Positions 6-61,804 of a stretch of DNA of 64,000 nucleotides are shown here, in pieces. Origin of the DNA: Malacoraja senta. Lineage: Eukaryota. Position numbers and translations under genes: made by a program. The notes beneath the pieces are model-generated. The model made no database searches. It was given only the letters and a program-made list of their open reading frames with translations, and had not been told where the DNA came from. Numbering within the stretch: position 1 is the first letter of the stretch; the number at the start of each line of letters is the position of its first letter. The DNA is taken from NCBI GenBank assembly GCA_038087875.1, contig CM075977.1, positions 111,352,001 to 111,416,000 of the forward strand. Reading direction: 5' to 3'.

Positions 6-105
6 TCACACAGAGTTATATGGTTCTGATCCTGTGGACCCCTCTAGGATTGAAAACCGTTTTCCTTTCAGTGATGTGTGTTATCTTCTACCGTGACAAA
101 CTCAG
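6..105 (+). CDS. Gene A transmembrane exon of a Siglec-15-like receptor (VTQSYMVLILWTPLGLKTVFLSVMCVIFYRDKL); Ig exons lie upstream of the window
   Basis: ctcag acceptor and ag|gtatgc donor; 100 nt, phase 1 to 2; clearly paralogous to the TM exons at 26086-26185 and 52071-52170; hydrophobic stretch with central Lys. Confidence 0.85.
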
Positions 106-888
106 GTATGCAATATTGATTTTCTATGCCTGGAATATAAACTCAATGGCCTTTGGGGTGTGATTGAAAAATGTGAGGCTTCCTAGGCCGCGCCAACCAT
201 CGATCATCCATGCACTAGTTCTATCCATGCGGTCACAGGGAGCACGTGGGAAATGCGCACAGACAGCACCCGTGATCAGGATCGAACCCGGCACTGCGCT
301 ACAAGGCAGCATCTCTACAACTGCGTCACCGTGGTACCCCTGTCGCGTTGGCAATACATGGTTCAGGTGCATCATGTACCTACAGATGGAAGAACAGTTT
401 CTTACCCGCTCAGACGCTTTGAGAAACCCCTCAAAAGATAAGAATGTATTCCCGATCCTCCAGTCTACCTTGATAGGGCCCTTGCCCTCTGCCCTTTCTC
501 TGTAAGACTATATTCTGCACGGCTTGGGTCTATGGAATAATTTATCTGGATGACACGCGAAACAAAGTTTTTTTCCTCGTATCTGTGTCAAGGTGACGAT
601 AATAAACCAATACCATACCTTGCTGCAGGTCAGACAATCTTCCTCACTGTCAACACAACGACCAATATACGTGTCCCCTGTTAAGTTAATCACCTGTTTC
701 GCATATTGATGTCCACGTCAAATTTAGTTGTCAAACGCTGACCTTGACAATAACGTCTCCCCCCTGGAGAATTCCGTTCAAATCTCCGTCCTAATCACTT
801 TAAGTGACGGCTTTGAATGGATGTGCCAGAAATGGTCTTGTGGTACAATTACCGTGGCTTGTTTTAATTGGTCTTGTTGTGTCCGCAG

Positions 889-904
889 CCAGCGTGGAGA
901 CTGA
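889..904 (+). CDS. Gene A terminal exon; direct splice from TM gives tail SQRGD*; alternative phase-1 frame stays open to 965 (SVETDPSEEAEQTSVPTAMEPASQ*)
   Basis: ttgttgtgtccgcag acceptor; homologous to 53666, 35991 and 61521 (shared GAGACTG core). Confidence 0.65.
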
Positions 905-1625
905 TCCATCCGAGGAAGCTGAGCAGACCAGTGTTCCGACTGCAATGGAACCTGCCTCGCAATGAAGTCCGCCGTTCCCACCTGCTTTTGCGGTCTGGCT
1001 GATTTTGTCGACCTTTGGTTGTCAATCATATTAATTCTCCGACTCGCTTTTAATCTTTGTGTAATATAATAAAATGCAGTACTAGTTCAAAAAAAAGGTT
1101 TTGTACTCCGAGAGGGTTTGATATCTGGAATATGCTAGTAAACAAAGTGGTGAAAATGAGATACACCAAAATGTACGATAGACGTTTGGACGCATGAACA
1201 GGCTCTTAATTAGGAAATAGTTGGAAGGATAGACAAAGTGCTGCAAATTCTCAGCTCCTTGGAATGGGACCGGGCACGAAGTGTCACGTTTCCATGTCCT
1301 ACAGATTTGCTGCCTGATCCGCTGAGTTACGCAAGTACATCGTGTCTATCTTTGGTATACACCGGCATCAGCAGTTCCCTCTTATTACAAGTTGGAAGGA
1401 TATGGATCTAATTGGGACCAACTGGAATAATGTACATAGTTAAAGATGTTCATATCGACATTATTGTCCGAAGGGCCAATTTCCTCACTGTACAATCCTC
1501 TGACACGTTGACTCCAGAAGCATGTCCAAACCTCCCTGCTGTGGCAACCACTGGATCCTGACCAACTTATTTCTAGTCTGTTCAAGAAGGAACTGCAGAT
1601 GCTGGAAAATCGAAGGTAGAAAACA

Positions 1626-1805
1626 TTGCTGGAGAAACTCAGCAGGTACGGCAGCATCTATGGAGCGAAGGAAATAGGCAACGGTTCGGGCCGAAACCCT
1701 TCTTCAGACTGATCTTCTTCAGTCTGAAGAAGGGTTTCGGCCCGAAACGTTGCCTATTTCCTTCGCTCCATAGATGCTGCCGTACCCGCTGAGTTTCTCC
1801 AGCAA
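1626..1805. repeat. Inverted pair of Penelope-associated terminal repeats (87-bp arms, 6-nt loop)
   Basis: 1626-1712 is the reverse complement of 1719-1805 with 2 mismatches; same repeat family as 14850-14940, 38170-38250 and 42820-42950. Confidence 0.8.
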
Positions 1806-4800: not shown

Positions 4801-4834
4801 TTTCAATCCCAGTGTGCCATGAACCAATTATTCT

Positions 4835-5130
4835 TAGTTTAGTTTAGTTTAGAGATACCAGGTGGAAACAGGCCCTTCGCCCCACCGAGTCCGCGCCGAC
4901 CAGAGATCCCCGCACTTTAACAACTTCCCACGCACACTGGGGACAATTTCAAAATGCGCCAAGCCAAATAACCTACAAATATGTACGTCTTTGGAGTGTG
5001 GGAGGAAACCGGACAATACCCACGCAGGTCACAGGGAGCACATACAAACTCCGTACAGACATCACGCGTAGTCAGGATCGAACACGGGTCTCTGGCGTTG
5101 TGCGGCCGTTCCTCTACAGTTGCGCCATCG
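4835..5130 (-). mobile_element. tRNA-derived SINE (HE1-like), representative minus-strand copy
   Basis: Head with A/B-box-like motifs on the minus strand and (ctaaa)n tail; many related copies across the window. Confidence 0.75.
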
Positions 5131-5389
5131 TGCCGCCATTTTTTACTCTTATTTGACTCGCACCGTCCGATTAACCAATCACCCGCCACGTTTGTTGTGT
5201 TTTCAGACCACCATGAGCAGGGTCACCTCACCTCAACCAAAAATTATTCTCTCTGATTTCCAGTTTCCTCCACGGAGCCAACACTTTCTAATTAAGACAC
5301 GAGTTATGGAATTTTCTTTTTTCGGGTTTCTCAGGCTAAGACCACATTGTCTACCAAGTTGGGCTCCACCAGTCCCATCACCATTACAT

Positions 5390-5695
5390 TTGGCGGCAAG
5401 GTGGCGCAGCGGTAGAGTTGCTGCCTTACAGCGCCAGAGACATGGGTTCGATCCCGACTACTCTCGGTGCTGTCTGTGCGAGTTTATACGTCCTCCCCGT
5501 AACCTGCGTGCGTTTTCTCCGGGATCTCGGGTTATCTCCCACACTCCAATGACGTAGAAACTTGTAGGCTAATTGGTTTGGTACAATTGTAAATTGTCAC
5601 TATTAAGTAGTGTGCGGGTTTCGCTGGTCGGCGCGGACACGCTGGATTAAAGGGCCTGTTTCGATTTAATCCGTGTCTCTAAACTAAATTAAACT
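5390..5695 (+). mobile_element. tRNA-derived SINE (HE1-like); further plus-strand copies at ~6795-7030, 14530-14830, 16780-17085, 25675-26015, 35535-35815, 44085-44395, 61955-62215
   Basis: GGTGGCGCAGCGGTAGAG A box, GGTTCGATCC B box, ctaaactaaa tail. Confidence 0.8.
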
Positions 5696-6129
5696 GAGAA
5701 TGATTGGTTCATGGCACACTGGGAGTGAAACCACGAGTAATTGGTGCGGAGATCGTTTGCTCGGTACGGACAGGGTGGGCTGAAGGGCCTGTTCCGGCGC
5801 TCTATCTCTAAACTAAACTAAACTAAACTAAACAGAGACAATAGAGCAGGAGCATCCAATTCCATCCTTCAGTTTTTTCCTCCACTCAACACAGTTCAGA
5901 CTAACTCCAGGATCCTGCTCCCTGTCCTCCCCGTATCAAGCATTCACAGATTCATATATAACATGTCCAAATCCCGACCCCACTCATTGCATTATCTAGG
6001 GATATGGGGGAAAGCAGAAACGGGGTACTGATTTTAGAAGAACAGCTATGATCATATTGAATAGCGGTGGTGGCTCGAACGGCACGACTACTCCTGCACC
6101 TATTTTTCTATGTTTCTGTGTTTCTATTA

Positions 6130-6190
6130 ACCACCACGAGCAGTCTGCTTTATTTTACCCGCCGCAATATGGGAGCGGCTCAATCAGGGG
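6130..6190 (-). pseudogene. Orphan terminal-exon paralog D (minus strand) with upstream intron homology to ~7270
   Basis: gttgtgaccgcag acceptor resembles gene A ttgtgtccgcag; 6130-6240 is homologous to 14300-14390; 6700-6760 reverse complement matches gene A intron 690-750; AATAAA downstream. Confidence 0.5.
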
Positions 6191-7186: not shown

Positions 7187-7245
7187 ACATAGTTGATGGG
7201 TTCCAGGCTATGATACTTGCGCTCAGCAGGATCGACCTGTGTTTC
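7187..7245 (-). CDS. Candidate 59-nt cytoplasmic 'middle' exon of paralog D
   Basis: ctctctggtcaag acceptor and gtaagt donor; length converts phase 2 to phase 1; region homologous to TM-downstream introns of B and C. Confidence 0.35.
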
Positions 7246-10700: not shown

Positions 10701-13700
10701 TTTCAGTTGACGCGCCAACAGCTTATGTGGTTTGTCACCAAACTCAAAATGTTCCTGTTTTGTAATTTGGAATAATCTTATTACTCTTGACGAGAGAATT
10801 CGGTTAAGTTTAAATTTCAGTAGTATTATCTTATTATGTTTATCTATAGTGGGATCTTTAGCATTATCTAACTCTAACTGTCTTATTTCTTGTTCTAACA
10901 GCATCTGTTCTGTTTTATTCTTCTTATTTTGAAAAATGTCATATGAAATTATAATTACTCTAATAAATGCTTTAAAAGTTTCCCATATTAAAGAAGGTGA
11001 GGTACCTGGTGTATCATTTATCTCAAAAAATGATATCATTTGTTGTTTCAAATATTGATAACCCTGTAAGTCATTTAATATATATGTATGAAACCTCAAA
11101 AAAAAATCTTTCCCGGCATTCCTTCAAATTTTACAAAAAAAGTAAACAGAGAGTGATCAGAAATACTACTAATATGGTATGTTGGGTTAATTATATATGG
11201 CATTAATTTCCTATCCACTAAAAAATAATCAATTCTTGAGTATGTTTTATGTACCGAAGAGTAAAACGAGTATTCCCTTCCTGCTGGGTTAGCAGATCTC
11301 CATACATCTGTTATGTTAGTATTTTTTTTATATATGTATTTAGAAATTCACTAGTCTTAGATTTTATATTACTCCTTCTTTGTTTTGCTGATTTGTCTAA
11401 GTATGGATCTAAAACAAAGTTGAAACCCCTCCTATTATAACATTTTGATAATTAAACTCCAGTATTATATCTATAATTTTCTCAAAGAATTGAGGGTTAT
11501 CAAAATTCGGAGCGTAAATATTTACCATAGTTATTGGGGTAGCATAAATTTCTCCCGAAACTATGATATACCTTCCCTCTTTATCTGATATAGTATTCTT
11601 TAATTTGAACGGTATACCTTTTCGAATAAGAATAGCCGTACCTCTAGATTTAGAAGTAAATGACGAATAATATGTTTGGCCTATCCACTTCGCCTTTAAT
11701 CTCATTTGTGTTTCCTGTTTCATGTGAGTTTCTTGCAAGTAAATTATGTCGCTTTTCAAAGATTTTAGGTGAGCAAAAATTTTACCCCTCTTTATTGGTT
11801 CATTGGCACCCCTTATATTCCAACTACAGAATGTGATTCCTCCATTCTTTATTTGTCTATCGTCTTGCATTGTATATCAAAGTAATATTCTCGAATCATA
11901 TGGTGCAAACAAATACCTCCGTGTTCTGGACGTTGGGTGGTCATTCCAAATTTTTAAGTTTACATTACATCTCCTTCTCCAAAAGTGCCTTAGATAAAGC
12001 AAGAAAAGTTGTGATTTACAATTAATTAAACACAAACTAAGTAAATACAAATTTGTATAGTGATTTTTTTTTTAAAGTGAAATTAAGGTATCTAAAAGCA
12101 GGTACCTTAAAGACAAATAGCCACCTAAGGTGGCGAAAGAATTATAGACTTCCCTTGATGTTATTTTACATTGAGCCCCAATCCCTTATAAACACCTCGT
12201 AAAAAAAACTACAAACCGTCTCATATCTTGTTTATTCTTGTTTAACTTTATCAAACTAGCGTTAGTATAAAGCCCCCCCCAAAAAAAAAAAAAAAAAAAC
12301 GCAAAGATAAAATATTAAAAAGTAAAAAAATAATGTAATTAAAAAGAAAAAAAAAACCAAATCCAAATATAAAACACAACCTATTCTCATTTCTATAAGT
12401 ATTTGTACCGTACCAATTTATCTAACCAGCTACCCTACAAGCAGGTACCGAGGGGTTAACCTCATTCCTGGATTTTTTCCAAGTTTATGTTGCGTTCCCA
12501 CCCAAAAAGAAAAAAAAACGTTAGTAATGTTATGGACATTTTGGTTAATTACAATTTATAAGCAATGGTTTATTCATGATTATTCATATTTACTACACAC
12601 ACTCACAAGTCATTAGTTTTGTTAAAGTTAGTTAGTTAATTGTAATTAGCATCGTCCCTGTTCCTTGTACAGTTTCTTCATGTTTATCTTTGAGCTTTTC
12701 ATTCAAGGTTAAACAATGTTCTCAAATACACATTCCAGACAGATAAGCTCAGTAACTGGCTGAAAAATCCACCAGTTCCAGCTCCATCTTAGAAATTAAA
12801 AAGTTCCTTGTTCTTTCTTTTAGTCGTCTTCTTCCGATGTTTCCGATGCTTTCCTCATGATATCTTCTGCATATTTAAACACTTTTTCTAGGTCCGTAAA
12901 TGATCGCTCAATTCCGTTATAAGTAATTTTCATTTTTGCTGGGAAAACAACTCCATATCTGACTTTAGAAATACCCCTCAATATGTTTCTTGTCGGTGTA
13001 AACAAGTTCATTCTCTGGACAATCTCTGGAGGATAATCACGGAACAATCGGATGTTTTCCCCACGATATATCAAATTTTCACCATGAACAATCTTCTTCA
13101 GTATAGATTCCACTGAAGAAATATCAAGAAATTTCACAATTATCTGTCTTGGAGCAGCATTTATGCCTCTTGAGACACGTCCAACTCGTTGAACAGTATC
13201 TATTCTTAGTTCTTCCGGCAGTTTAAAAACCTCTTTGAGTAATTCAGTAACGAAAGTACGTGTTTGAGATACATGTTCTTCTCGTCCTTCTCTTACTCCA
13301 ACGATTCTCAAATTCTGCCTTCTCGCTCTCGCTTCCAAGTCCAAACATGTGTCAGTCATTCTTGCCAGCTTTTCTGCTTCATCTTTCTTTGATTTTTTCA
13401 GACTGTTTACTTCCATGATCATCTTTCATATTACTTTCCATCTCTTCCATTCTCTCGTCAATGTTGTCCATCTTAGCATTTACACCAACAAATTTCTTAT
13501 TATAGTCCTTTTCAATTCTAACAATTTCTGAGTTAAGTTTTTTATCACTCATTATGTTGCTTCTTCAGCTCCTTTAACTCATCACAGGCACCATCAATTT
13601 TATGAGAGAATATTTCCATATTATTCTCCATACTCTTAATTGTAGTAGTAATTTCTACAAACATTTCCTTTACCTCCAGTTCTTTCTTTCCTCCTTTTGT

Positions 13701-20800: not shown

Positions 20801-20824
20801 GCTGACTGGTTAGCATGCAACACA

Positions 20825-23243
20825 TATAATAAGAAATTTACTGGTGTAAATGATAAGATGGGCGACTATAATGGACTCGCTGGATGTCCCTATCCAGCTA
20901 TCTATCAAGTTAAACAATTAATCCAATAAAGACCCGGAGACACGAGATGTCGTTGATTCTTTACTGTATTCAACTGTTTAACTTGATAGATAGCTGGATA
21001 GGGACATCCAGCGAGTCCATTATAGTGAAAAGACAATGCGTCTAACAAACTGGTGGGTAGGATGGCATTAGATTGTGCGCTTGGAATTACATTCTACACC
21101 ATGTGGTACTCTCCCTGAACTGGACTTCCTGGATTATGATAACTTCCTGCCTAACAGGAAAGGTAACTTAAAGCTGTAGGAACCTGAATATCCAGCAGGT
21201 GGCATTAATACCTGTAAACAGAAAGTGGTCCAGCATAGCGACCTTGATGAGAGAATGGAAGAGATGCAAAATGACATGAAAGAGATGATTACGGAAATAA
21301 ATAGTTTGAAAAAATCAAAGAGAGCTGAAGAAGAAAAGCTTGCAAGAATGACTGACAAATGTTTGGACTTGGAAGCGAGATCGAGAAGGCAGAATTTGAG
21401 AATTGTTGGAGTAAGAGAAGGGCGAGAAGGACATGGATCTCAAACACGTACTTTCGTTGCTCAATTACTCAAAGATGTTTTTAAACTGCCGGAAGAATCA
21501 AGAATAGATATCGTTCACCGAGTTGGACGTGTCTCGAGACATAAATGCTGCTCCAAGACAGATAATTATGAAATTTCTCGACATCTCTTCAGTGGAATTT
21601 ATACTGAATAAGATTGTCCATGGGGAGAATTTGATATATCGTGGGGATAATATTCGATTTTTCCGTGACTATCCTCCGGAGGTCGTCCAGAGTAGGAACT
21701 TGTTTACACAGACAAGAAACATACTGAGAGGAATACCCCAGGTCAGATATGGGATGGTCTTCCCAGCAAAAATGAAAATTACTTATAACGGAACTGAGCG
21801 CTCATTTATGGATCCCGAAAAAGCTTTTAAGTATGCAGAAGATATCGTAAGAAAAGCGTCGAAAGCATCGGAAGAAGATGTCGAGGAGGTGGAAGATTGA
21901 ATTTCTTAACTTTTAAGATAGAGTTTGGAACTGGCTAAGATGGTGGATTTTTCCAGACAGTTACCGAGCTTATCTGTCTGGAATGTGTATTTGAGACATT
22001 GTCCATGTTTCACCTTGAATGCAAAGCTCAAAGATAAACAAAAGGACGTTGAATATACAGAAGTAATGAAGGAATGTATAAGGGACATGGACGAGATAAT
22101 ATTAGTACTAACTGTTGATTTAAGAAAATATCTAACCATTATATTCTAATTATAATTAACCAACTAATTTAACAAATTTAATAATACTCATTATTTGTGA
22201 GTGTATGTAGTAAATATGAACAAATCATGAATAAACCATTGCTTATAAATAGTAATTAACCAAAATGTCTATAACATTACTAACCGTTTTTTTCTTGTGT
22301 GGGAAGGAGTTAGGGGCAATATAAACTTGGAAAAGATCCAGGAATGAGGTTTTGTTTAACCCCTCGGTACCTGCTTGTATGGTAGTTGGTTAGATAAATT
22401 GGAAAGGAATAAATACTTATAGAACTGAGAATATGTTGTGTTTTATATATATATATATATTTTTTTTACTTTTTTATATTTTTTCTCTGAGTCTTTTTGG
22501 TTTTTACTAGTGCTAGTTTGATAAATTTAAATAAGAATAAACAAGATATGAGACGGTCTGTAGCTTTTTATGAGGTGTTAATAAGGGATTGGAGTTCAAT
22601 GTAAAACAACACCAACGGAAGTCCATACATTTTTCGCCACCTTAGGTGGCTATTTGTCTTTAAGGTATCTTTTCTTAGATACCTTAACTTTGTATTTGCT
22701 TAGTTTCTTTGTAATCAACTTTAAATCACAATTTTTCTTTCTTTATCTAAGGTACTTTTGGAGAAGGAGATGTAATATAAACTTAAAAACTTGGGATGAC
22801 CACCCAACACCCAGAATTCTGAGGTATTTGTTTGCACCATATGATTTAAGAATACTATTTTGATATATAATGCAAGACGATAGACAAATAAAGAATGGAG
22901 GAATCACATTCTGTAGTTGGAATATAAGGGGTGCCAATGAACCAATAAAGAGGGGTAAAATTTTTGCTCACCTAAAATCTTTGAAATGCGACATCATCTT
23001 TTTGCAAGAAACCCACATGAAACAGCAAACACAAATGAGATTAAAGGTGAAGTGGATAGGTCAATATTATTCGTCATTTACTTCTAAATCTAGAGGTACG
23101 GCTATTCTTATTCGAAAAGGTATACCTTTCAAATTAAAGAATACTATATCAGATAAAGAGGGAAGGTACATCATAGTTTCGGGAGAAATTTATGCAACCC
23201 CTCTAACTATGATAAATATTTACGCTCCGAATTTTGATAACCC
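20825..23243 (+). mobile_element. Second, partial L1 copy (ORF1 3' part, spacer, EN start), inverted relative to 7773-14038, runs into the gap
   Basis: High similarity to 11400-13505, with the same MQDDRQIKNGGITFCSWNIRGANEPIKRG; interrupted by an insertion at 20867-21237. Confidence 0.9.
20867..21237. mobile_element. 371-bp solo-LTR-like insertion with internal perfect 52-bp inverted repeat
   Basis: GCGAC duplicated at 20862-20866 and 21238-21242; termini TATAATGGAC...GTCCAGCATA; IR 20865-20916 / 20975-21026. Confidence 0.6.
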
Positions 23244-23443
23244 NNNNNNNNNNNNNNNNNNNNNNNNNNNNNNNNNNNNNNNNNNNNNNNNNNNNNNNNN
23301 NNNNNNNNNNNNNNNNNNNNNNNNNNNNNNNNNNNNNNNNNNNNNNNNNNNNNNNNNNNNNNNNNNNNNNNNNNNNNNNNNNNNNNNNNNNNNNNNNNNN
23401 NNNNNNNNNNNNNNNNNNNNNNNNNNNNNNNNNNNNNNNNNNN

Positions 23444-24480: not shown

Positions 24481-26085
24481 TATTAGGTTGCTAATATCTT
24501 GGATTGCTCAACTCTACAGATTAAACTGGATGTCAGAGAAGGGGGGTAGTTGTGGATGTTTAATCATGACCCAAACATATGAGCGAGCTGGACAAAACAT
24601 GCTGCAATAACTCAGTGGGTCGGGCAGAATGTCTGGGGAAACGGAATAGGTGACGTTTCGGGTCGAGACCTTTCATGGCCGAGCTTATAGCTTTTGGGGC
24701 AGGACTGTGTAGACCAGGAGACGGGTGTACCATTGGTCTGGGTTAACGTATGATGAGCGTTTTACGGCACCGTGCCTGTACTCGCTGGAGTTTAGAAGGA
24801 TGATAGTGGACCTCATTGAAACTTACAGAACAGTGAAAGGCTTGGATAATGTGGATGTTGAGCGGATGTTTATTGTGAGAGTCTAGGACCAGAGGACATA
24901 GCCTCAAGATTAAAGAACGTTCCTTTAGGAAGGAGACGAGGAAAATGTATTTAGTCATAGGCTTGTGAATCTGTAGAATTCTGCCACAGAAGACTGTGGA
25001 GGCCAAGTCAATGGATATTTTTAAGGCAGGTATACATAGATTCAAGTTCCAGTCCACATTTATTCTGACATGCACCAATTAAGGTACAGTGATATTTGAG
25101 TTACCATGCAGCCATATAATTAAAAGGACACAATACACGATAGAACTTAACATAAACATCCACCACAGTGATCACTGTGGAGGAAGGCAATAAGTACGGG
25201 TTAGTACGGGTCTTAAGGGTTATGGGGAAATAGCAGGGGGATGGGGTTATCAGGGAGAGATAGGTCAGCCATGATTGAATGTCGCAGTAGATTTGATGGG
25301 CTGAATGGCCTAATTCTGCTCCTGTCACCTTATGATCATGCTTTTTCAATCCCACCTGGGGCTGTGATTAGGACTTATCAACGTGTCTCAGTGCAGGTGG
25401 AATGGGCAGAGACAGCAGTGTCTTGGGCTTCTACTCCGGCGAGGAACCAGTGATTTGCCAGGCATATATAGTGTGTTTGCATTTATGAAGGCAATTCAAC
25501 GTGGAAATATACAAGAGTTATCAACAGCAAAAATAACCTTTTTGAATTGCATCACAGTTATAATGTGGATAGTGAAAGCAGGAGAATGGGATTGAGGGAA
25601 AGATAAATGCGCCTTGACCGAATGACGGAGACTCGATGAGCCTTATGGCCTATTACTGCGCCTATGACTCATGAACGAACCACTTCCCAACACACGGTGG
25701 CGCAGCGCTGGAGAGTTGCTGCCTCACAGCGTCAGAGACGAGGGTTCGACCCTCTCTACCAAAGATCATCTTTGCTGTCTGCAGGTCCTGTCTGTACGGA
25801 GTTTGTACGTTCTCCCTGTGACCAGCGTGGATTTTCTCAGAGATCTCCGGTTTCCTCCCACGCTCCAAAATCGTAGAGGTTTGACGGCTAATTGGCTTGA
25901 TATAATTGTGAATTATCCCTGGTGTATGCAGGATGGTGTTAGTGTACGAGGATCGCTGGTCGGCTCTGACTTAACGGGCCTGTTTCCGCACTGTATTTTA
26001 AAGGGAACTAAACTAAACGCACAAAAATTCTCTGTTAATTATGTATCGGTCATTTAGATTGAAAGGAATGTATAATGTTACATAC

Positions 26086-26185
26086 CTGAGTTTGGCACTA
26101 CAATAAATGAAAGACATCACGAACAGGGCAAAGGTTTTCAATCCAAGCGGAATGCACAAGATCACAATGGGGGCAACCTGTGTGA
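26086..26185 (-). CDS. Gene B transmembrane exon (VTQVAPIVILCIPLGLKTFALFVMSFIYCSAKL)
   Basis: cttcag acceptor, ag|gtatgt donor; 100 nt, phase 1 to 2; in frame with V2; Lys in TM. Confidence 0.9.
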
Positions 26186-32201: not shown

Positions 32202-33572
32202 NNNNNNNNNNNNNNNNNNNNNNNNNNNNNNNNNNNNNNNNNNNNNNNNNNNNNNNNNNNNNNNNNNNNNNNNNNNNNNNNNNNNNNNNNNNNNNNNNNN
32301 NNNNNNNNNNNNNNNNNNNNNNNNNNNNNNNNNNNNNNNNNNNNNNNNNNNNNNNNNNNNNNNNNNNNNNNNNNNNNNNNNNNNNNNNNNNAGAGAGAGA
32401 TGAGTCAATGTTAGAACAACTGGGGAACATATCTGCTGTTTCAGAGCTGCACTGCCTGGTGTGTAGTCACAAGTGCTACCGTGTGCGATGTCCGTGTGCG
32501 TGACTTCTACAGTAACATAGGGGAGTGGTTTCCAGACCGGGAGATATTGGGGGTGGCGGGAGTGGTATTTGCAGATGGGGGTAGTGGGGGGGGGGGGCGG
32601 TGGATGTGTGGTATTTTCGGATGGGTTGGGAGGGGCGAGGGGGGCGGGGATGGGAGGGCGGGGGTGGGGGTGCCAACAGCAATGAATAACCAGAAGACAG
32701 CCACTGAGGTCCAATTCTGGGGCAGGGGATGGGCTGTCTATAATTCGTGTCTGAATCTTGGGTCGGTTGTCTATATATAAATACCATTGTATTTTTTTCT
32801 GGATGAACAGCGATATTTGAACATTGTGTAACTCGGATTTGGTACAAAGGCGTTTCTGGAACTCAGTCCGTGTGACAGTATGGTTACAGCAGGAAAATGG
32901 GACATTCGGCCCCTTCCTCTATGAAAGAGCAATATTATCAAACCTATTCACCTGGACCAATAGACCCGCAAATGCCTTCGTTTCTGAGGCATTCCTCATT
33001 CCCTTAAAACGCTGCAGTTTTATCACTCACGCTTTCCTCCCCCATCCCCACTTCCATCCGGCCCTATGTTGCAGACCAGTGAGGAACATTGTTTCTTCGA
33101 ACCTACTTGACCAATCGCATTCCATCTGTAACTTCTTCTTGTTCCTTTCACCGACGGGAACAGCCTCACTCTGTTTTACACCCTTCATAATTTTACATAC
33201 CCCAATCGGGTCTCCTTGCAATCTCCACTTGCTCCGCTAATAAATAAGACTGTGATCTCCTCTGCTCTTAATTCCAACTCCCCATTTTCGCTTGCATCGA
33301 ACAACATTCCACCCACTTACCCGTCAAGTGTCCCACTCTGGGTTGGAAAGGATTGGTCCGTGTGCAATTGTATCCACCTACTCTGCCGCCGGTTGACCCG
33401 CACGGAAGGAGTGAAGAGAATCATCAAGACCTCATCCACTCCCTGGCAAGGGCACTCAGTGACGGTCAAGATCAGTATATTTCCCACCGCCGACTGACTT
33501 CGGTGGGAGCTAAAGTACAGACAGCTGGAGCACTGGCAGCATCCGATGAGACAAGGAAGGGAAAACACCTAC

Positions 33573-33633: not shown

Positions 33634-33709
33634 CGCCAACACTTCAGTGTGGTGTCCACCTCACCGACTGCTGTTTAAGTGCTGGCACTGAAATACAGAA
33701 GTAGCTTAA

Positions 33710-37431: not shown

Positions 37432-40400
37432 TAGTAAGATTAAACGAGAACTTACCAGTTTGAAGTTTGATCTTTATTTTGTGAGGAGTTACGTTGGTGA
37501 TTACGTAAAGAAGACCCGTCAGGGCGCCTACGCGTCAATCTTCAAAGCAGCGGTGTGAAATCACAACCAACAAGAACGAGTAATATAGTAACCTAATAAA
37601 ACGAGTAAATTAATAACTTCCATCTGACCTTTATGATAGAGGGTTGAGTGTGGTGGGCACATAATCACCAACGTAACTCCTCATAAAATAAAGGTCAAAC
37701 TGCAAGCTGGTAAGTTCTCGTTTAATCTTACTATTTTACTTCGTAGTCACGTGCGTGACTACGTGAAGATTTTAAAGCTTTGTGATTTCATGCCGCAGAT
37801 ACAAATCCCGGCTTCTCACTGCATTGATTGACTCGGAACGAGAAATCATCAATAATGCATTAATAATAACATTTGTACAACAAATGCAGTAATTCATGTA
37901 TTTTAATAATGAATTTAATAGGATCCCCTTTAAACCAGAGGAATTTATTCAGAGCTTAAATTAGTTTCTGCAAACAGTCCCGCATTAACAATAGGCCGAT
38001 GGTAAAACTGTGGAAACGTCAACTCATTGGACAACCCGGCGGCTGCGAGAATATGGTCGACGGGGACGTCCTTCGCCCTGGCCTCCGACGTTGCTGCTGC
38101 CCAAGACGATTGGGACGTAAAACATCAGTGTTAATACCTGCAGCTATCAAGACTTGTTTTAGCCATCTTGAGAATGCTGGAGAAACTCAGCGGGTGCAGC
38201 AGCATCTATGGAGCGAAGGAAATAGGTAACGTTTCGGGCCGAAACCCTTCGGTTTCTCTTGTGTGGTAAACAATCCAGTTTCCATATTTCGTAAGATCTT
38301 TGTAACCTCAATGTATTGTAACAAATATGCCTTAATACAGAGACATGGCTCCGTTGGATATGCTGACAAAACAATTCTGAATCCTGTCACACCTGGCCTA
38401 CTTTATTTCAGTAGGTCATGAATGTAAAACATAACATTACCTTCAGCTACTTCCATCCTGTCTATTTGCCATTTTTTGCAATGTCTGCCCTCGCTGTGCT
38501 GTTACTAATGCCATTAACATGACCACTTTCATACTGAGTTTGTCCAAAGGCATAGACATACCAGGGGACCATTCACGAAGTAGCTTAAGAACCACACTTA
38601 CATCCCAGATTGCCATGTACCTAGGCTTAGGAGGTCTGGAATTAAAAATGTCTTTCATTAATCTGGAAACAAGTGGATGAGACCCAATAGGATTTCCTTC
38701 TGACTCCACAAATAAATATGAGGACAATGCACTCCTGGCTGAATTAATTGCTCTATAACCCAACCCTTCATCGTAGTAAAGTGTTGACAAAAACTCTAAA
38801 ACATTTGAGATATCTGCCGTACAATATTCAACATTCTTTTGTACACATAACTTTTCCTATTTCTTAATATAAGAAAGGTACTGCTTTTGAGTGCTCTTCC
38901 TCCAGGCTGCCGTAAGCATGTCCACAGTACACACAGACAGTCCTCGCCCGAGAAAAGACCTTCTTAAAACCTGCAAATTAACAAATCCAAACGTTCATAT
39001 AATGGATGTTGTTCTCCTGTTACCGGATGCAGTAGTAAATCCCTTCTTTTTGGGACTTTCATCAAAGGCTGTGTCGTCAATTCTAATATTAACGGAAACC
39101 ATGGCTGTGTAGGCCACGCTGGTACCACCAATACCCCTGAAGCAGTATCTTGCCTGATTTTAAGCAAACACCGTCTTATGAGGCAGAAAGTTGGAAATGC
39201 ATACAAAGACATACCACCCCAATGTAGCGAGAAAGCATCAATCGCTACTGCACCTGGATCTGGTTCCCATGACACATATCTCGATAATTGATGATTTAAT
39301 CTAGATGCAAATAAGTCGATATCTGGCATTCCAAATCTGATTACTATGTCATTGAATACCTCACGATTCAACATCCATTCTTTGTTATCATGGAATTTTC
39401 TTGACCTGGTGTCTGCTATAATATTCAATCTACCTGGTAGATAAATAGGTGAAATCCAAATATTATTTTCAATACACCAAGACCAGATTTGATTAGCCAA
39501 TTTGTCACATGACACCGACTTGATTCCACCCATATGATTAATATATGCAACTGCTGTTGTGTTATCAATTTGAAACTGAACATGCAGGTTAGTCGTGTTA
39601 GAGCAATAAGCTTGCAGTCCATAGAAACCTCCTAAAAGCTCCAAATAGTTAATTCCCCATGTCTGCAGTAACAATGACTCTTCCTGATTCCATCTGCCTC
39701 TGCAGTTGGATACCAAATCAGTTGCACCCCATCCTAGTGCACTGACATCAGTTTGTAATATCATGGAAGGCTGTTCAATCAGTACATTACTGAAACTGCT
39801 TGAGACATGTAGAATCCACCAATGCAAATCAGAAACAGCATTTGTTATTAAAATATCTATCAAAATGGCCACCATGCGTTCTCAGTGCCTGTTCTTTTGC
39901 TCTCTGTAACTGCTGGTAATGTAATGGCCCATATTGTACTGCTGGGAAAGCTGCTACTAATTTCCCCAGCACTCTAGCCACATATCTAATTGAAGGTTTT
40001 TGCTCATTTAACAGCTTAATACAATCCTCAATCAACTCCACCCTTTTTTCACTGGGCAAAGTAATTTCTATGTGAACTGAATCAATTGTGAAACCCAAAT
40101 AATCAACTGATGTATGTGGTGTTAACCTTGATTTCTTTGGATGAATTAGAAACCCCAAACTTTCAAAAGTGGATTTAACAACTGAAACAGATAATTCTGT
40201 TGACTCTTTTGTTCGTCCTATAATCAGGACATCATCCAAGTACGCCATTACCATATGCCCCTGGCTTCTCAACAGTCCCATAAATGGTTTTAACAATTTA
40301 GTGAATATTCTGGGAGCTGAAGTTAACCCATTAGGCAGAGCTTTAAACTGCCATAACTGGTTCATCCAGGTAGTTGCCGTATAACATGCTTTTGAAATAA

Positions 40401-53665: not shown

Positions 53666-53681
53666 AAAGGGCGGAGACTGA
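53666..53681 (+). CDS. Gene C terminal exon; direct splice gives tail RKGGD*
   Basis: gtttcgtcctctgcag acceptor; GGAGACTGA conserved with gene A. Confidence 0.65.
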
Positions 53682-54629
53682 GCCATTGCAGGAAGTTAAG
53701 AAGACCATTTTCTGACCACAATGTACACCATCTCCCTCCCTTGAGATCCGATCTACGACGAACTTGCGATTACAATCATTAGTTTTATCCAATGATATCC
53801 ACTGAGAACCTCATCCCGTTGATAATCCCGAGAGCAAATTCCCTGTGTCACTTTGTGGGAATAGCTGAGTCCTCTGTGTGCCTCTGCAAAGCATTTGCTC
53901 ACGAATCACCTGCCTGCTTAACTTTCCTCGTATGTTGCAAACATACTTGGCTAATAAAGTATTACTGTGATTGTGATTGCGATTGATTTTGATTTGCGTT
54001 ATTGATGTCAATAAAGACGGCAGTGGGAAGAGATGTGCTTTGCCGCTATCCGCCGTTCCACTGCCGCCAGAGTCTACTGTAGTCCATTATTGTGCATGAA
54101 GGCTTCATTGTCCGGTACAGAGAGGAAATGTTCATGTCGTGGAAGAACGAGAGAGGGCGGCACGGTGGAGCAGACCAAGGGTCCACCAGGTCCTCGAAGG
54201 TCCGCAGGTTTCCACGGTTGGAGCTCCCGAGGTCGATCGCTGGCAAAGGGGTCGCGAGCTCCGCGATTTTAAGTCCGCAGGCTCCCGCGTTTGGAGATCC
54301 CAAAGTCGATCCCCAGCAAGAGGCCGCCAGCTCCTCGATATTAGGCCGCAGTGCGGACGGGGATAGGATAGGGAAGAAATCGTATATACGTCGGGGTACA
54401 GATTAAAAACATGTTTCCCCCAACCCCAGCCCCCCTCCCACCACCACCACCACACACGCATAATACACAACTAAAGGTACACTAAAACATACATTTAACA
54501 AGAGACTAAAAACAACAAAGAAGGAAAAAGACGAGGCAGACCGTTGCGAGGCAGCCATAGTAACGTGCCACCTGGTGACAAGTATTTCTTCATGTCCGTT
54601 AAAAACCCGCACGTGCTGTAGCAATTAAT

Positions 54630-57600
54630 AGTAAGATTAAACGAGAACTTACCTGTTTGAAGTTTGATCTTTATTTTATGAGGAGTTACGATGAAGGGCT
54701 ACGTGAAGAAGACCCCGTCCAGCCGCACACGCGTGAATCTTCAAAGCAGCGGTGTGAAATCACAGATAATAATTACTGAAGTATGATAGTAAGATACGTG
54801 AAGACTAGAACTACCAAATGACCTTTATGAGGGGTGGGAGTGGAGGGCACGTAGTCCCTCATCGTAACTCCTCATAAAATATAGATCAAACTTCAAACTG
54901 GTAAGTTCTCGTTTAATCTTACAATTTTACTTCGGAGTCACGTGAGTGACTAGGTGAAGATTTTAAAGCTCTGTGATTTCATGCCGCAGATTCAAATCCA
55001 GGAGTCTCACTGCATTGATTGACTCTAAATGAGTAAAGCAATCAACAATGCATAACCACAACATAAATGCAATCAGTTAATGGTTAATTTATCACAACAA
55101 TAGTAACCCCTTTATCACAAGGGGGAACTTAATATTGAATCCAAAACAGCACCACCAAATAACCCAGGTTCTGTAATCTCCTTATGGTAATACTTGTGAA
55201 TCATCCGTTCACTTGTCCTGCGGCCGCCAGGATATGATCTATTGGGACGTCCAAATCCTTGGCCGCCGATGTTGATGCCGCCCTGGTGGAATGAAATTTA
55301 AATTTGTCAGTATCAATACCTGCATCAACCAACACCTGCTTCAGCCATCTTGAAATAGTCTGAACCGACACTTTCTTATGCGTTTTTTTATGGCTGATAA
55401 AGAATGCTGATTCTGCACCTTTTAAGGTTCTGGTGGCTTCAATGTAACATCATAAATGTGATACTACACATAGACGTGGATCCGTAGGATATGCTGAAAA
55501 AAACAACTTACACCCTGTGACTCCAGGTCTACTCTGTTTAAGGAAATCATAGACATAGAACTTAATGGCATCTGCTGCTATTTTCATCTTGTCTATTCGT
55601 AGTTACTGCAATGTTTGCACTCTCTGTGCTGAAACCAGTGCCATGAGCATGGCTACCTTCATGGTAATTTTGGCCAAGGACAAAGCTGCAATAGGAGTCC
55701 ATTGACGAAGGGGCATTAGTACATCTCTTACATTCCAGATTTCTGTATACCTGGGTCTAGGGGGCTTAGAATTGAAAATTCCCTTCATAAATCTACAGAC
55801 CAAAGGGTGTGACCCTACAGGATTTTGTTCTGATTCCCTCCATAGATGTGCAGAGAGGGCACTCCTTGCAGTATTGATCGCAGTATAGCTTAACTGCAAA
55901 TTAAAATATAAAGAGTTGACAGAATGCTGAGATGTTTGCAGTGTGATATGTAATATTCTGCCTTAAGCAAAACACCTCCCATTTCCTTATGTAAGAAATG
56001 TACTGCTTCTGGGTACTATCCCTCCAGGCTGCTGCAATAACATCCACAGTACGATCTGATAGTCCTCTTCCGAGATATGGCCTCCTGAGAATCTGCAAAT
56101 CAACAAACCAATATGACAATGAAATGATGCGAATCACCAGTTACAGGGTGCACAAGCATGTTTTCCTGTTTGGGAATAATCATAAGGGGCTTTGTGATCA
56201 TTTTTAACACCAGAGGGTACCACGGTTGTGTAGGCCAGTCTGGTACCACCAATACTCCTGAAGCGGAGTCCTGTTTGATCTTCTGTATACTTTGACTAAT
56301 GAGGCAAAATGGAGGAAATGCATACAAAACATTCTACCCCAATGCAGCGAGAAACATCCACCGCTACTGCCCCAGGTTCAGGTTCCCATGACACATATTT
56401 AGGTAATTGGTGGTTAAGTCTGGATGCAAACAAGTCAATCTCTGGCATCCCGAACCGTGCAACAATGTTAGTACATTTGTCACGATCCAACATCCATTCT
56501 GTATTGTCATTGCATTTACGTGACCTTGTGTCTGCAACTATGTTGAATCTACCTGGTAGGTAGATTGCAGAAAGCCAAATGTTTCTGGTAATACACCAGG
56601 TCCAGATCACGTTTGCCAATCTATCACAAGATTCTGACTTGATACCACACATATGATTAACATATGTTACTGTTCCGTAGTGTTGTCAATCTGTACCTGA
56701 ACCTGCACATTTTGCATATTAGAGCAATAAGCTTTGAGCCCATAAAATGTTCCTAAAATCTCTAGGTAATTGATCCCTTGTTCTTGGAGCAAAGGTACTT
56801 CCTCCAAATTCCATCTACCTCCACAGCTGGAAGTAGTATTAGTAGCTCCCCAACCTAGAGCACTTACATCAGTCTGTAGAATAATGGAAGGTGCTTCAAC
56901 CAGAATTCCTCTGGAAGCATTTGAGACACTCCTGATTCACTATTGTATTTCAGTAATAGCTGCAATTGGCAATTGCATGGGTCTGTCAAAATGCCCTGAA
57001 TGTCCTCAATGCCTGTACCTTTGTTCATTGTAATTGCTGATAATGCAGCGATCCAAACTGTACAGCCGGAAATGAAGCAATTAGTTTGACAAGCACGATT
57101 GCTACCTGCCTAATTGAGGGTTGGTGCTGTGTAATTAGCTTAATACAACGTTCAATTAACTGCAGCCTTTATCCTTGGGCAGAGTCACTACCATGTGTTC
57201 TGAATTAATAGTGAAACCCAAGTAATCAATTACTGTGCTTGGTAATATTTTGGACTTAACTGGATGGATAATCAATCCCAGCCTCTCGAAAATGAGCGTG
57301 ATTCTTGACACTGATGCTTCTGTTGTAGCCCGACTGTCTCCCACAATCAGAATATATCCAAATAGGCCAATACCAAATGCCCCTTAGCTCTTAGTAGTGC
57401 TAAGATTGGTTTTTAATAATTTGGTAAATAGTCTCGGAGCTGAGGTTAAACCATTAGGCAAATGCTTTAAATTGCCATAATTGACTCATCCAGCTACGTT
57501 TTAAGTATCTCTGATCATTACCATGCACAGCCACAGTAATATGCATCCATATAGCATTTTCTTGAAATTAGCTGTATAGCGTTGGCAAATGTCTCCATTT

Positions 57601-59601
57601 TAAAATGTTTATGCTGTACAAAAGGGTTAAGACTTGTCAGATCTAGAATAATTCTACATCCGCATCCTTTTTTTTTTGCTCTAGAAAAATACTTGACACA
57701 AACTGGTGGTGTTGGTCAACTGACTTCTCAATTACACCTTTTTTACACAATATTTCAAGTTCTGCCTGAATCTGCATATTCTCTTCTTTTGAGAAAATAC
57801 GTTACCGGCTTGAAATATGCTGAGTAGGAGGATCCAAATATGGATAGAATTTAATTCTAAACCCCACAATACTGCACAGTATGAATGCACCAGATATTAT
57901 TTTTTGCCATTCTTTTGGGAAGAATTGTAATCTTCCTCCAACTTGTAAGTGTGAAACATTTAATATGTCTCTTACAGGACCAGTCCCACCTACCTCGGGG
58001 TTTGCCGATGGCAATTGTTGTCCCCTGCTCTTAATGGGAATACTGTAACCTCCACGTGTCCCAGGAGCAGTGCGCCAATAACGCATACATGGGAAAGACC
58101 GATTTGTCCCTTCAGCGGCCCCAGTCACCACACGTCGGTAGGGAAAAACTGCCTTCGAATTGATCTGCCAAGCACCGGTGGTTTCATCATCCTCGCGGTT
58201 TTTGCTTCTTCATTCAGGTCTTTTAACCTTTTGGTTAGATTCTCTCAAAAAAGCAGATTTAGGCAATTGAATATTGGATGGGTTACAGAGCCCCGCAAAC
58301 TTAGTGTGTATGTTAGGTCTTATAGCACTTCTACGAATACAGTTTATTTCAAAGCACGCACTACACATGATGCAGACACGTGGTCCTCATCCAAGCCTCT
58401 GGCGAAAGCCTTAATGCCTGACCCCAGGAATACCAACACCCGCTGTAATTTCATTTCTTGTGCGCGTACTGCAATGCCCAAATAGCCCCATATTACATTA
58501 CTCCCGACTGGGACTGCTAGCTAGTTTCATATTTTTTGACAGTCTCATCCATGGTCAGTTCATGGAGCTGATGGGAGAGCAAGTAATTTATTGTCATTGC
58601 TGATTCATCTCCCAATGGTTCCACTGTTAGTCTGGCAACGACAAATTTTAGTGCCAGACCTGGCATTTTAGGCTCTGTTATTGGGCTCTGGTCCTCATAT
58701 GATTCATCATCTGAATCTTGCTGCATACAATAGGCCTCCTCATGGAGGGGGCGATCTTGCATCCTGTTTCAGGTGTTTCAAGCGCTGGCTCTCCCATAGG
58801 CCCACGCATAGTAAACTCTTTTTCAGGTGCTCGTCGCGCGGGCTCTCCTGTAGGCCCACGCATAGGCAGCCCTCTTTCAGTTGCTGCTGGCGCTGGCTCT
58901 CCTGTAGGCCAATGCCTAAACTGTCTCCTTCAGATATTGTTGGCGCTGGCTCTCCTGTAGGCCAACGCCTACAGGCCAACACATAAAATGCCCTTGTTCA
59001 GGCATTGATGGCGCTGGCTCTCCTGTAGGCCAAATCTGAAGCGGACCTTTCCCAGGCACTCCCTGCGCTGGCTCTCCTGTAGGCCAACGCTGAGCCGGAC
59101 CTTTCCCAGGCACTCCCAGGACCTTTCCCAATCTCCCGTAGGCCAACGCGTACCCGAGTAGACAAAATGTCTGCCTGAGGCGGGAAATCTCCGGGTATGA
59201 CTCCTCAGAGTCTACTGGCCGCACGGACGTTTGCCTGGCCTTGTGCCCTAATGGCGCTATAACGGTACTTATTTTAACCGCTTCTGTAGTCGATGGCCTC
59301 GCTGCCACCGACTCCTCAACCGGGCGCCCGCTACTCGCAGACCCTCGGTCTTCTCGAGTTTTACCTGCGGTACGCCTCCCTTACGCCCTGTCTCCATTCT
59401 AACTTGTGTTGTCTTACAACTACAAGTTTCTCCGAAGAAGGCGACCTGAAAGCGAAAGTGAAACCACTTACCTTCAGGCTTTTTAAACTTACCGCTTGCT
59501 CCTCTACACACGGGCGCTGCGCTATGCGTCTGACGATATGACGCGTGTGCGGCTGGACTGGGTCTTCTTCACGTAGTCACTCACGTGACTCGGAAGTAAA
59601 A
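54630..59601 (-). mobile_element. Second DIRS1-type retrotransposon, degenerate, with minisatellite in the gag region
   Basis: Same terminal motif taagattaaacgagaacttacc; ICR ~54860-54960; YR INTARSALS/HPLVCRFMKG; DLFASRLNHQ; RT remnants; right terminus cttcttcacgtagtcactcacgtgactcgg. Confidence 0.9.
58775..59150. repeat. Variable-length minisatellite with core CGCTGGCTCTCCTGTAGGCC (about 8 units)
   Basis: Core repeats every ~40-55 bp inside the DIRS gag region. Confidence 0.85.
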
Positions 59602-60499
59602 TGATTGCCAGGAAGTCAATCCTTCTGTGCAATGTTAGAGTCACGGTGTCTGACAGAAAGAGGCTCTTCGGCTCGGCATATGCTTGGCCATCATCGGATC
59701 ACCATTTTTTAATCCCATTTACCAGCACCTGGTTCGTTGCCTTCTACATCTTTATAACTGGTGAACTCGTGAAAGTCTATTCAGGTAATAACAAGGAACT
59801 GCAGGGGCTGGTTTATACCAAACAAAGACACAGAATGCTGTAGTAGCTCAGCAGGTCTGGCAGCATCTTTGGTGAATATGAACAGGTGTGCGATCATAGA
59901 GCATGTGAAGGTGCAACTCTTTCCATTGACTGGATAGCACGCAACAAATACGTTTTTCATTGTACCTTGGTACACAGGGCGATAAACTAAACTAAACTAT
60001 ACAAGATTACAATCAAGCCGTCCATAATGTACCGAAAAGGGGATTACCGTTTAGTTCTAGATAAAGTCCAGTAAAGTCCGATTACAGATAGTCCGAGGGT
60101 CTCCAATGAGGTAATGGTAGTTGTCTAGTTGATGATAGATGGTCCAGATGCCTGTTGGCAGCTGGGAAGAAACTATCCCAGAATCTGGAGGTGTACGTTC
60201 TCACTCTTCTGTACCTCTTACCTGAAGGAAGAGGGGAGACGAGGATGTGTCCGAAATGAGACTCGTCCTTGCTTATGCTGGTGGCCTTGCCGAGGCAAAG
60301 CTGGCAAGTGCTAGTTGGGTGCCCATGTGCAGAAATCCCGAGGGGGGGGGACACGTCACCCCCATGTTTTGAGAGGTGGGGGACAACCCCCCCCCCATGT
60401 TTTGAAATTCGTTGAAAAATAATCTATTAAAATCTCCGTTTAAAAATCGGTAGACTGGGTAGCGATCTTGTTGTGCAAGGCCCTTTGCGATAGTGACGA

Positions 60500-61150
60500 T
60501 AATATGGTGGAATTCGGCATTAGGATGGAGAGCGACACGGCGAATTCAGGGACTAGCGACCTGAACTTGAAGAAAGGAAACTGGCGGTAGGAGACGGGCA
60601 TTGGCAAGGATAGACTGGCAAATGGTGCTTATAGAGCTGACGGTGGAGATGCAATGGTAAAGATTTAAAGATCGAATGGATGAATTACAATTGTTCATCC
60701 ATGTCTAGCGTAAACATAAAACGGGGAAGACGGATCAAGGCTAACGAGGGAAATTATGGACATGGTTAAATGCAAGGGAGAGGCAAAGATGACTGCGAGA
60801 AATTTCGAATTCAAAAGAGGAGGTCAAAGGGGTTAATTAAGAGGGGCGAAATGGAGCATGAGTGGAAGCTTGCGGGGGAAAATGGACTTTGAAAGCTTCT
60901 TTAGATATGTGATGTATAAAAGATTAGCGAAGAAAAATGTAGGTCCCTTACAGTCAGAAAGAGGTGAATGTATAATGGGAAACGAGGAAATGGCAGACCA
61001 GGTAAACGAGTATTTGGTCCCTTACAATCAGACAGATGACTTTATAATGGGAAATAAGGGAATGGCAGAACAGTTAAACGAGTAGTTTGGTTTTGTCTTC
61101 GCTAAGGAAGATACAAACAATCTCCAACAAATACTAGGGGACCGAGGATC
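60500..61150 (+). mobile_element. CR1 (HER1-like) internal fragment
   Basis: Homologous to 29080-29700; 61014-61125 identical to 29552-29663. Confidence 0.8.
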
Positions 61151-61520
61151 TAGTGGGAGGGAGGAATACTAGTACTATGCAACATACCAGGGACAATTTA
61201 CGAGTTTACATCAGCAAAGTAACCTACAAACCTGCACGTCTTTGGAGTGCGGGAGGAGAACGGAGCTCCCGGAGAAAACCCACGCAGTGCACACTGCACA
61301 CAGACAGCACCCGTAGTCAGGATCTATCCGCTTGTCTGGCACTGCAAGACAGCACCTCTACCACTGTGCCACCGCGCCGCGGAAGTGTCTACGCTCTAAT
61401 GAGTTCAGTTGAAGTCACGGACCAACCCCCGTCAAAGATTTCTGCTGGCGGTTAACTGAGTGGTTGTATTTGTACCATTACCCACCCTCACTCAGGTCAT
61501 GTTCTTTCTGTTCATTGCAG

Positions 61521-61804
61521 AAATGGTCGAGACTGATAGATCGCAGGAGGATGGGAGGACCAAATTTTCGAACACCGTGTACACCCAACCGGCCGTCCCG
61601 GTACTGAAAGCGTACACCGACCTGCGCCGCACCTACGATCGCAATTTTTCGTTGCGTGCCATCGTATCGACTGACAATTTCATCCGGTTCATAAATGTCA
61701 CAGCTGATCGCCATGTCGTTCTGTGGGAATCGCTGAATTCTACGCTTGCTTTTTGCAAAGCATTTGCTCGTGACTCAACTGCCTGCCTTATTTGTTGCTA
61801 TTGA
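61521..61804 (+). CDS. Extra terminal-exon paralog F; phase-1 frame open and Tyr-bearing (EMVETDRSQEDGRTKFSNTVYTQPAVPVLKAYTDLRRTYDRNF...); phase-2 frame gives RNGRD*
   Basis: ttctttctgttcattgcag acceptor; 61385-61800 homologous to 53530-53940 (gagttcagttgaag, ttgtaccatta, tgcaaagcatttgctc). Confidence 0.55.

Follow-up and report, generated by a model that had tools for sequence, protein, structure and literature searches.

What are the immunoglobulin (Ig)-type exons that lie clustered in a 64-kb stretch of DNA from the skate Malacoraja senta (contig CM075977.1), and from which receptor lineage do they descend? In the usual view, Siglec-15 belongs to the small conserved set of Siglecs and occurs from fish to human as a single V-C2 gene, and the fast-evolving paired Siglecs are CD33-related. 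We surveyed the whole stretch, a 64-kb piece of repeat-rich vertebrate DNA referred to below as the window, by six-frame translation and tblastn. Two kinds of Ig-type exon (V1 and V2) were found in two copies each, together with three copies of a transmembrane (TM) exon. They belong to three genes inside 54 kb, which follow one another in alternating orientation as A (plus strand), B (minus strand) and C (plus strand). Judging from sequence, we propose with a probability of roughly 0.72 that these genes are part of a tandem cluster, and that the cluster falls within a multigene family of elasmobranch type I membrane receptors derived from the Siglec-15 lineage. The encoded proteins would each consist of a signal peptide, a membrane-distal Siglec-15-type lectin domain (V1), a second V domain (V2), and a TM helix with a central Lys and a stub tail of about 10 residues.

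Gene C occupies positions 43836-53681 of the plus strand. Its exons, and the assembly gap that lies among them, are:

43836-43896, plus strand: leader exon, 61 nt, with the ATG, 20 codons plus 1 nt, and a phase-1 donor (A/GTGAGT)
45868-46039: run of Ns covering part of intron 1, the V1 acceptor and the first V1 bases
46040-46424, plus strand: visible part of the V1 exon, 128 codons plus 1 nt, donor G/GTGAGG, a Siglec-15-type V-set domain
49044-49445, plus strand: V2 exon, 402 nt, phase 1-1, a V-set domain with a long F-G loop
52071-52170, plus strand: TM exon, 100 nt, phase 1-2, Lys codon at 52118-52120
53666-53681, plus strand: terminal exon, 16 nt, which completes an Arg codon and then reads K-G-G-D-stop

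Spliced gene C would encode about 321 aa (20 leader residues, a junction codon and 300 residues). Its coding sequence of about 960 nt in 5 exons contains no stop and no frameshift, and all visible splice sites are intact. Along its entire length, the product can be aligned with complete RefSeq models from other skates and rays (residues 1-300 with P0004, P0009, P0013 and P0018). It is 87% identical to the thorny-skate protein P0003, and the sequence at the V1/V2 junction is the same in both. At the DNA level, a thorny-skate locus (L001) is collinear with window positions 42144-53134 at 87-93% identity, introns included. The gene C leader is 97% identical to that of the thorny-skate orthologue and 88% identical to the leader of gene B, and the TM exon is 94% identical to its thorny-skate counterpart. 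The sequences on either side of the gap align in order and orientation to this one locus (L001 17328-17906 and 19130-20895), and the orthologous protein has a single junction codon upstream of the V1 that is visible in gene C. These data indicate that the leader and V1 belong to one gene and that the V1 exon is nearly complete.

Gene B lies on the minus strand between 33633 and 26086, with the following parts:

33633-33573, minus strand: leader exon, 61 nt, donor GTAGGT
32202-32391: run of Ns covering the V1 acceptor and about 5 V1 codons
32201-31842, minus strand: visible part of the V1 exon, a Siglec-15-type V-set domain
28777-28397, minus strand: V2 exon, 381 nt, phase 1-1
26185-26086, minus strand: TM exon, 100 nt, Lys codon at 26138-26136

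The continuity of gene B across its V1 gap is plausible. Its reading frame is open through 279 codons and is still open at the TM donor, where read-through adds 24 residues. Motif and peptide searches of the minus strand below 26086 found no terminal exon. Similarity between genes B and C is confined to the exons and short flanking stretches, where the DNA identity of 78-88% is far above chance. When the V exons of B and C were compared, the synonymous divergence (dS) was 0.29, and the ratio of nonsynonymous to synonymous divergence (dN/dS) was 0.56 in each V exon.

Gene A enters the window at its 3' end, and one further terminal exon stands by itself:

6-105, plus strand: gene A TM exon, 100 nt, Lys codon at 53-55; the upstream exons lie before the window
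889-904, plus strand: gene A terminal exon, which completes a Ser codon and then reads Q-R-G-D-stop
61521-61536, plus strand: orphan look-alike of a terminal exon, N-G-R-D-stop, with no upstream exons in the window

The stub tails QRGD (gene A) and KGGD (gene C) have counterparts in homologues, which end in KRED, KRQD or KSGD; the last of these is found in the thorny-skate homologue P0007. All three terminal exons also contain, in a second frame of the plus strand, an acidic motif (ETDPSEE at 897-917, ETEPLQE at 53674-53694 and ETDRSQE at 61529-61549). This motif resembles the long tail of a horn-shark isoform (E = 0.002).

A preliminary description of this locus had placed exon edges at positions 6, 26086, 33633, 43836 and 53681, and had described a third TM exon and an expansion in both orientations. 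All five positions are real exon edges, the third TM exon is that of gene A, and genes are present on both strands. Other elements of that description need to be narrowed. The canonical GT-AG sites and compatible phases were confirmed at every visible site, while both V1 acceptors lie inside gaps. Of the two proteins of about 320 aa, C has this length when spliced, and the terminal exon of B was not found. Rather than several orphan 3' ends, the window contains three terminal exons, and only the one at 61521-61536 is an orphan.

The domain nearest to V1, by sequence and by fold, is the V domain of Siglec-15. The scores of all four Ig exons lie above the Pfam V-set gathering cut-off of 26 bits (V1 of C, 34.6; V1 of B, 30.4; V2 of C, 47; V2 of B, 48 bits). 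When V1 was searched against the PDB with phmmer, the best match was the Siglec-15 V domain (7zoz, E = 5e-12), followed by sialoadhesin (9e-5); pIgR reached E = 0.09, and no CD300 was among the top 60 matches. The AlphaFold2 model of the gene C V1 (predicted local distance difference test score, pLDDT, 86) gave 7zoz as its top Foldseek match, with a template-modelling score of 0.78-0.80, and then the sialoside-binding domain of sialoadhesin. We also aligned V1 with Siglec-15-named proteins of mammal, bird, frog, coelacanth and bowfin and with an unnamed characiform V-C2-TM(Lys) protein. They have the blocks LPC(T/S)FTHP, R(F/Y)xLxGNxRxxDxS and YxCRVE(L/F) in common.

The two V1 copies differ at residues that matter for a Siglec. 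At the essential sialic-acid-binding position, equivalent to human R143 and located in the 'CRVE' column, gene C encodes Arg (CGT, 46364-46366, plus strand) and gene B encodes Gln (CAA, 31902-31900). Gene B has both Cys of an extra pair. Gene C has Arg (CGT, 46208-46210, plus strand) where its relatives and its orthologue have the first Cys of this extra C' pair.

V2 is, by its sequence and its modelled structure, a true V-set domain. In the AlphaFold2 model of the gene C V2 (pLDDT 87), C' and C'' are among the nine strands, and the top 50 PDB matches in a fold search were all IgV. Among single-domain PDB matches the Siglec-15 V domain was again best (1e-6), and a single pIgR domain was weaker (4e-5). 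Within the family, the V2 framework is conserved, with a majority-residue frequency of 0.69. The corresponding value for the F-G loop is 0.14, making it hypervariable; the loop spans 9-32 residues and is rich in Tyr, His and Pro in batoids.

Next to the complete V2 exon of gene C lies a partial copy of its 3' third (49694-49903, plus strand; L001 22275-22490), which encodes the end of the F strand, a different F-G loop and the G strand. It has its own GTAAG donor, and no acceptor was seen. Its conservation in thorny skate makes this an old copy, perhaps a relic, perhaps a spare cassette for the loop.

The TM exons link the three genes to Siglec-15 as well. In all three, a central Lys (AAA) lies within PLGLKT. 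The corresponding motifs of Siglec-15-named proteins are PLGIKV (birds), ALGAKT (frog) and ALGIKL (lungfish). Siglec-15 depends on its TM Lys to associate with DAP10/DAP12 and on R143 to bind sialic acid (PMC7226832).

No C2 exon lies between V2 and TM in genes B and C. In tblastn searches of the window with C2-to-end probes from 8 relatives and tail probes from 7, no C2 remnant and no exon with an immunoreceptor tyrosine-based inhibitory motif (ITIM) was found. The three TM exons and a weak match at 855-947 were the only returns from these 15 probes. The phases of the V2 donor and the TM acceptor match directly, neither B nor C has a gap between V2 and TM, and the V2-to-TM intron of thorny skate is collinear and has no extra exon. 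Thus the Siglec-15-like character of V1 and of the PLGLKT helix, the V-set nature of the second domain and the absence of a C2 exon between V2 and TM, all proposed in the preliminary description, hold up well.

Genes of this layout are widespread in elasmobranchs. Searched with V2, the database yielded 48 proteins of about a dozen elasmobranch species, with several in each; the genera are Amblyraja, Leucoraja, Rhinoraja, Hemitrygon, Hypanus, Mobula, Pristis, Heterodontus, Hemiscyllium and Pristiophorus. The exhaustive V1 search gave 146 matches. Most of the complete models among the V2 matches have the leader-V-V-TM(Lys)-stub layout, and more than 20 RefSeq models join V2 directly to TM. Their NCBI names vary ('sialic acid-binding Ig-like lectin 15', 'uncharacterized', 'sialoadhesin-like', 'HAVCR1-like', 'pIgR-like'). 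The cluster had initially been called hidden, a word that does not fit a layout already present in NCBI models of at least 12 species of rays, skates and sharks. Our literature search found no paper on chondrichthyan Siglec-15-like genes or on this receptor family. As far as we found, the skate V-V-TM(Lys) family is thus present in automatic annotation and has no published description.

Some relatives carry the same leader and V1 and have an uncharged TM segment and a long ITIM-like tail. They occur in little skate, Narcine, Mustelus, Hemitrygon and Heterodontus. The little-skate pair P0005 (with the Lys) and P0051 (ITIM-like) has 83% identity throughout the ectodomain and no relationship beyond it; ITIM-like tails are also found in P0053, P0054, P0057 and P0060. 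Because Lys and ITIM forms have near-identical ectodomains, as in P0005 and P0051, the sequences indicate that this is a family of paired activating and inhibitory receptors across sharks and batoids. A charged TM segment with a short tail is present in A, B and C, and ITIM members were found in related species only, with none in the window. The earlier idea of a lineage-specific activating family therefore has to be revised, as ITIM members also exist and the family is spread over sharks and batoids.

A second group of proteins retains a C2 domain after two V domains. These V-V-C2-TM proteins include Callorhinchus LOC103174418 (once named Siglec-15), Mobula hypostoma LOC134346377 ('Siglec-15 X2'), an ITIM form in Heptranchias ('Siglec-12 X3') and a protein in Narcine. 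Further models of V-V-C2 type are a thorny-skate multi-V-C2 protein and proteins of lungfish and characiform fish. The TM Lys is kept in the V-V-C2-TM forms of Callorhinchus, Mobula and lungfish.

Outside elasmobranchs, Siglec-15-named or Siglec-15-like genes are also varied when set against the textbook V-C2-TM(Lys) form (P0077, P0050, P0096, P0068, P0084, P0170, P0151). V duplications occur in lungfish (up to 7 V) and in a characiform, a V-V-ITIM form in salamanders, and ITIM tails without the TM Lys in paddlefish and carp. The preliminary description had taken Siglec-15 to be generally a single conserved gene, which does not agree with the many Siglec-15-named variants in bony fishes, lungfish and salamanders.

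To place V1 and V2, we used a tree of 80 V domains (IQ-TREE, LG+C20, 124 columns) with unnamed multi-domain proteins as the outgroup. With so short an alignment, many forks are weakly resolved. The V1 domains of the family form one clade (100/98) and the V2 domains another (100/99). Both fall within a group (support 90 in the Shimodaira-Hasegawa-like approximate likelihood ratio test) that is otherwise almost entirely Siglec-15-named and is separate from the outgroup; its Siglec-15-named members come from bowfin, coelacanth, sturgeon, paddlefish, carp, turtle, frog, bird and mammal. V2 is joined to the second V domain of the chondrichthyan V-V-C2 proteins (100/98). Constraining V1 to group with the first V domain of these proteins costs 1.5 log-likelihood units and is not rejected (approximately unbiased test, p = 0.43). 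In lungfish and characiform fish the two V domains are sister to each other, indicating that these V duplications were independent.

Since V2 is sister to the second V of V-V-C2 proteins, V2 would have coexisted with C2 before the C2-less form arose. The most likely course, on this tree, is that C2 was lost from a V-V-C2 ancestor and was not replaced by V2. A V-V-C2 Siglec-15-like receptor would then have existed before the split of elasmobranchs and chimaeras, and loss of the C2 exon would have given the V-V type of the window before sharks and batoids diverged.

Several observations weigh against an intact Siglec-15-derived receptor cluster. The splice models were built from genomic sequence. 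The three gaps in the window were left unfilled, exon edges were read directly from sequence, and the V1 acceptors of B and C are both hidden in gaps. Gene B lacks the essential Arg and a detected terminal exon. In gene C a conserved Cys of the extra pair is missing, and the partner Cys is left unpaired. In the tree, V1 and the Siglec-15-named V domains, canonical Siglec-15 included, form a polytomy. Between the two skates, exons are conserved at 90-97% and introns at 90-93%, with omega ~0.58. For the lectin and signalling parts, zebrafish Siglec-15 bound the tested glycans poorly (PMC7226832), so an intact Arg is no guarantee of lectin activity, and no paper on DAP12 of cartilaginous fish came up in our literature search.

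As assembled, gene C's orthologue in thorny skate carries two disabling lesions, a deletion of 10 nt in the region of the V2 F-G loop (L001 ~21955) and an in-frame TAG in the TM exon (26035-26132). The NCBI model P0003 ends in V2 and misses the conserved TM exon. No terminal exon of gene C was found in L001, where collinearity stops at window position 53134; a match of 14-26 nt at L001 ~1080 was considered as this exon and rejected, as it belongs to a retroelement zinc knuckle. With a pseudogene as the orthologue, and with exons conserved no better than introns, this pair does not demonstrate purifying selection on the window copies.

Could the copies in the window simply be decaying pseudogenes of the family, with no functional receptor among them? 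Much of what was just described points that way: the missing terminal exon and the Gln of gene B, the lost Cys of gene C, the disabled thorny-skate orthologue, the similar conservation of exons and introns with omega ~0.58, and a cluster full of retroelements. However, the five exons of gene C are uninterrupted over about 960 coding nt with their visible splice sites intact, and gene B is open for 279 codons. The dN/dS of 0.56 in both V exons of B and C, at a dS of 0.29, and the Lys codon and PLGLK kept in all three TM exons also speak against decay of the whole cluster. We consider this explanation unlikely. Under the receptor-family reading, the cluster would undergo birth-and-death evolution, in which single copies, B above all, may be becoming pseudogenes; the pseudogene state of gene C's thorny-skate orthologue fits such turnover.

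An improbable alternative, and the one favored in the preliminary description, is that exon shuffling in this lineage inserted a second V in place of C2. Canonical Siglec-15 of tetrapods and teleosts is V-C2-TM, and the window genes do have a V at the place of C2. However, V-V-C2-TM proteins exist in Callorhinchus, Heptranchias, Mobula and Narcine, and it is their second V that is sister to V2 (100/98), which argues for loss of C2 instead.

It is very improbable that the genes belong to another V-receptor family of fish, either the skate MDIRs (CD300/pIgR/TREM-like) or a NITR-like family. The MDIRs are a skate family with activating and inhibitory receptors, V2 has weak pIgR matches (E ~4e-5), and NCBI calls some members 'pIgR-like' or 'HAVCR1-like'. 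However, Siglec-15 is the best match of V1 in both sequence and fold by a wide margin over pIgR (0.09) and over CD300, which is not in the top 60. Its V domain is also the best single-domain PDB match of V2, both V domains sit in an almost wholly Siglec-15-named clade, and no Raja eglanteria MDIR protein was among the V2 database matches. Finally, the three gaps in the window could suggest conventional V-C2-TM Siglec-15 genes with an overlooked or unassembled C2 exon, but this is scarcely credible given that no gap lies between V2 and TM in either gene, that the 8 C2 probes were negative and the V2 donor and TM acceptor phases fit, and that more than 20 RefSeq models and the collinear thorny-skate intron go from V2 to TM without an extra exon.

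If the genes are receptors of the Siglec-15 lineage, their function may be outlined by analogy. In the Lys members, A, B and C included, the TM Lys would pair with the TM Asp of a DAP12/DAP10-type adaptor, as in Siglec-15. V1 domains with the F-strand Arg, as in gene C, would bind sialylated ligands, and the specificity of Arg-less V1 domains, such as that of gene B with its Gln, would be changed or lost.

A more speculative extension, which we think quite unlikely to hold, concerns the V2 loop. The loop could form a second ligand site resembling complementarity-determining region 3 (CDR3). The family would then be a germline-encoded variable repertoire in which a V1 sensing sialic acid as 'self' is coupled to a diversified V2, in activating and inhibitory versions. 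If this were true, the cassette at 49694-49903 would be a trace of loop swapping, and elasmobranchs would have built from Siglec-15 their own counterpart of KIR, NITR and the CD33-related Siglecs.

The remainder of the window is rich in mobile elements. Two L1-like copies of a long interspersed nuclear element (LINE), with an open reading frame 1 RNA-binding domain, endonuclease and reverse transcriptase, lie at 11494-13464 and 21241-23243 in opposite orientation and are 83-92% identical. The third gap borders the second of them:

23244-23443: run of Ns at the edge of a LINE copy; exons are untouched

Genes B and C stand head to head across a 10-kb spacer that contains a retroelement (37433-42143) with an RVT_1 open frame (39829-40632, minus strand). 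This element is an insertion absent from the orthologous thorny-skate locus, and a related copy lies at 54629-57797.

In thorny skate, a 7tm_1 gene (G-protein-coupled receptor) lies at L001 30472-31973, about 4 kb 3' of the TM exon. When this stretch was compared with the window by tblastx, only short matches of 25-42 residues on either strand were returned, one set of them at 60151-60276. Apart from this 7tm_1 gene, neither the window nor L001 contains flanking genes that are informative for SIGLEC15 synteny.

Taken as the Siglec-15-derived family that we propose, these genes would bear on gene-family evolution, with no bearing on practice. In sharks, skates and rays, the Siglec-15 branch would have given a clustered, turning-over, paired family with a V-V ectodomain, and the V-V module would date at least to the common ancestor of elasmobranchs and chimaeras. 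The family would provide a defined set of candidates for DAP12-type activating receptors of cartilaginous fish, a natural series of lectin domains with and without the Arg, and a case for dating the present two-domain form of Siglec-15.

How do the skate genes compare with known systems? With Siglec-15 of bony vertebrates they have in common an N-terminal Siglec-type V domain with LPC(T/S)FTHP and YxCRVE(L/F), the F-strand Arg (gene C), the extra Cys pair (gene B), a central TM Lys in (P/A)LG(I/L/F)K and phase-1 Ig exons. In contrast to Siglec-15, they have a second V-set where Siglec-15 has a single C2-set, a tail of about 10 residues rather than roughly 50, and a multigene cluster with fast turnover and some Arg-less members rather than one conserved gene. 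The chondrichthyan V-V-C2-TM proteins have two V domains in the same order, the second of which is sister to V2. They differ in keeping C2 between V2 and TM, in a first V with about 30% identity to V1, and in a TM motif that is less like that of Siglec-15.

The CD33-related Siglecs, PILR and KIR-type receptors of mammals are likewise clustered and fast-evolving. They also include charged-TM short-tail forms and ITIM forms with near-identical ectodomains, and the essential Arg has repeatedly been lost in some copies. The skate expansion, however, would be independent, arising from the Siglec-15 branch in another host lineage and having V-V rather than V-C2n ectodomains. The skate MDIRs are a multigene V-domain family with activating and inhibitory members as well, but their V domains are described as CD300/TREM/pIgR-like, which, going by these descriptions, sets them apart from receptors with a Siglec-15-like V1.

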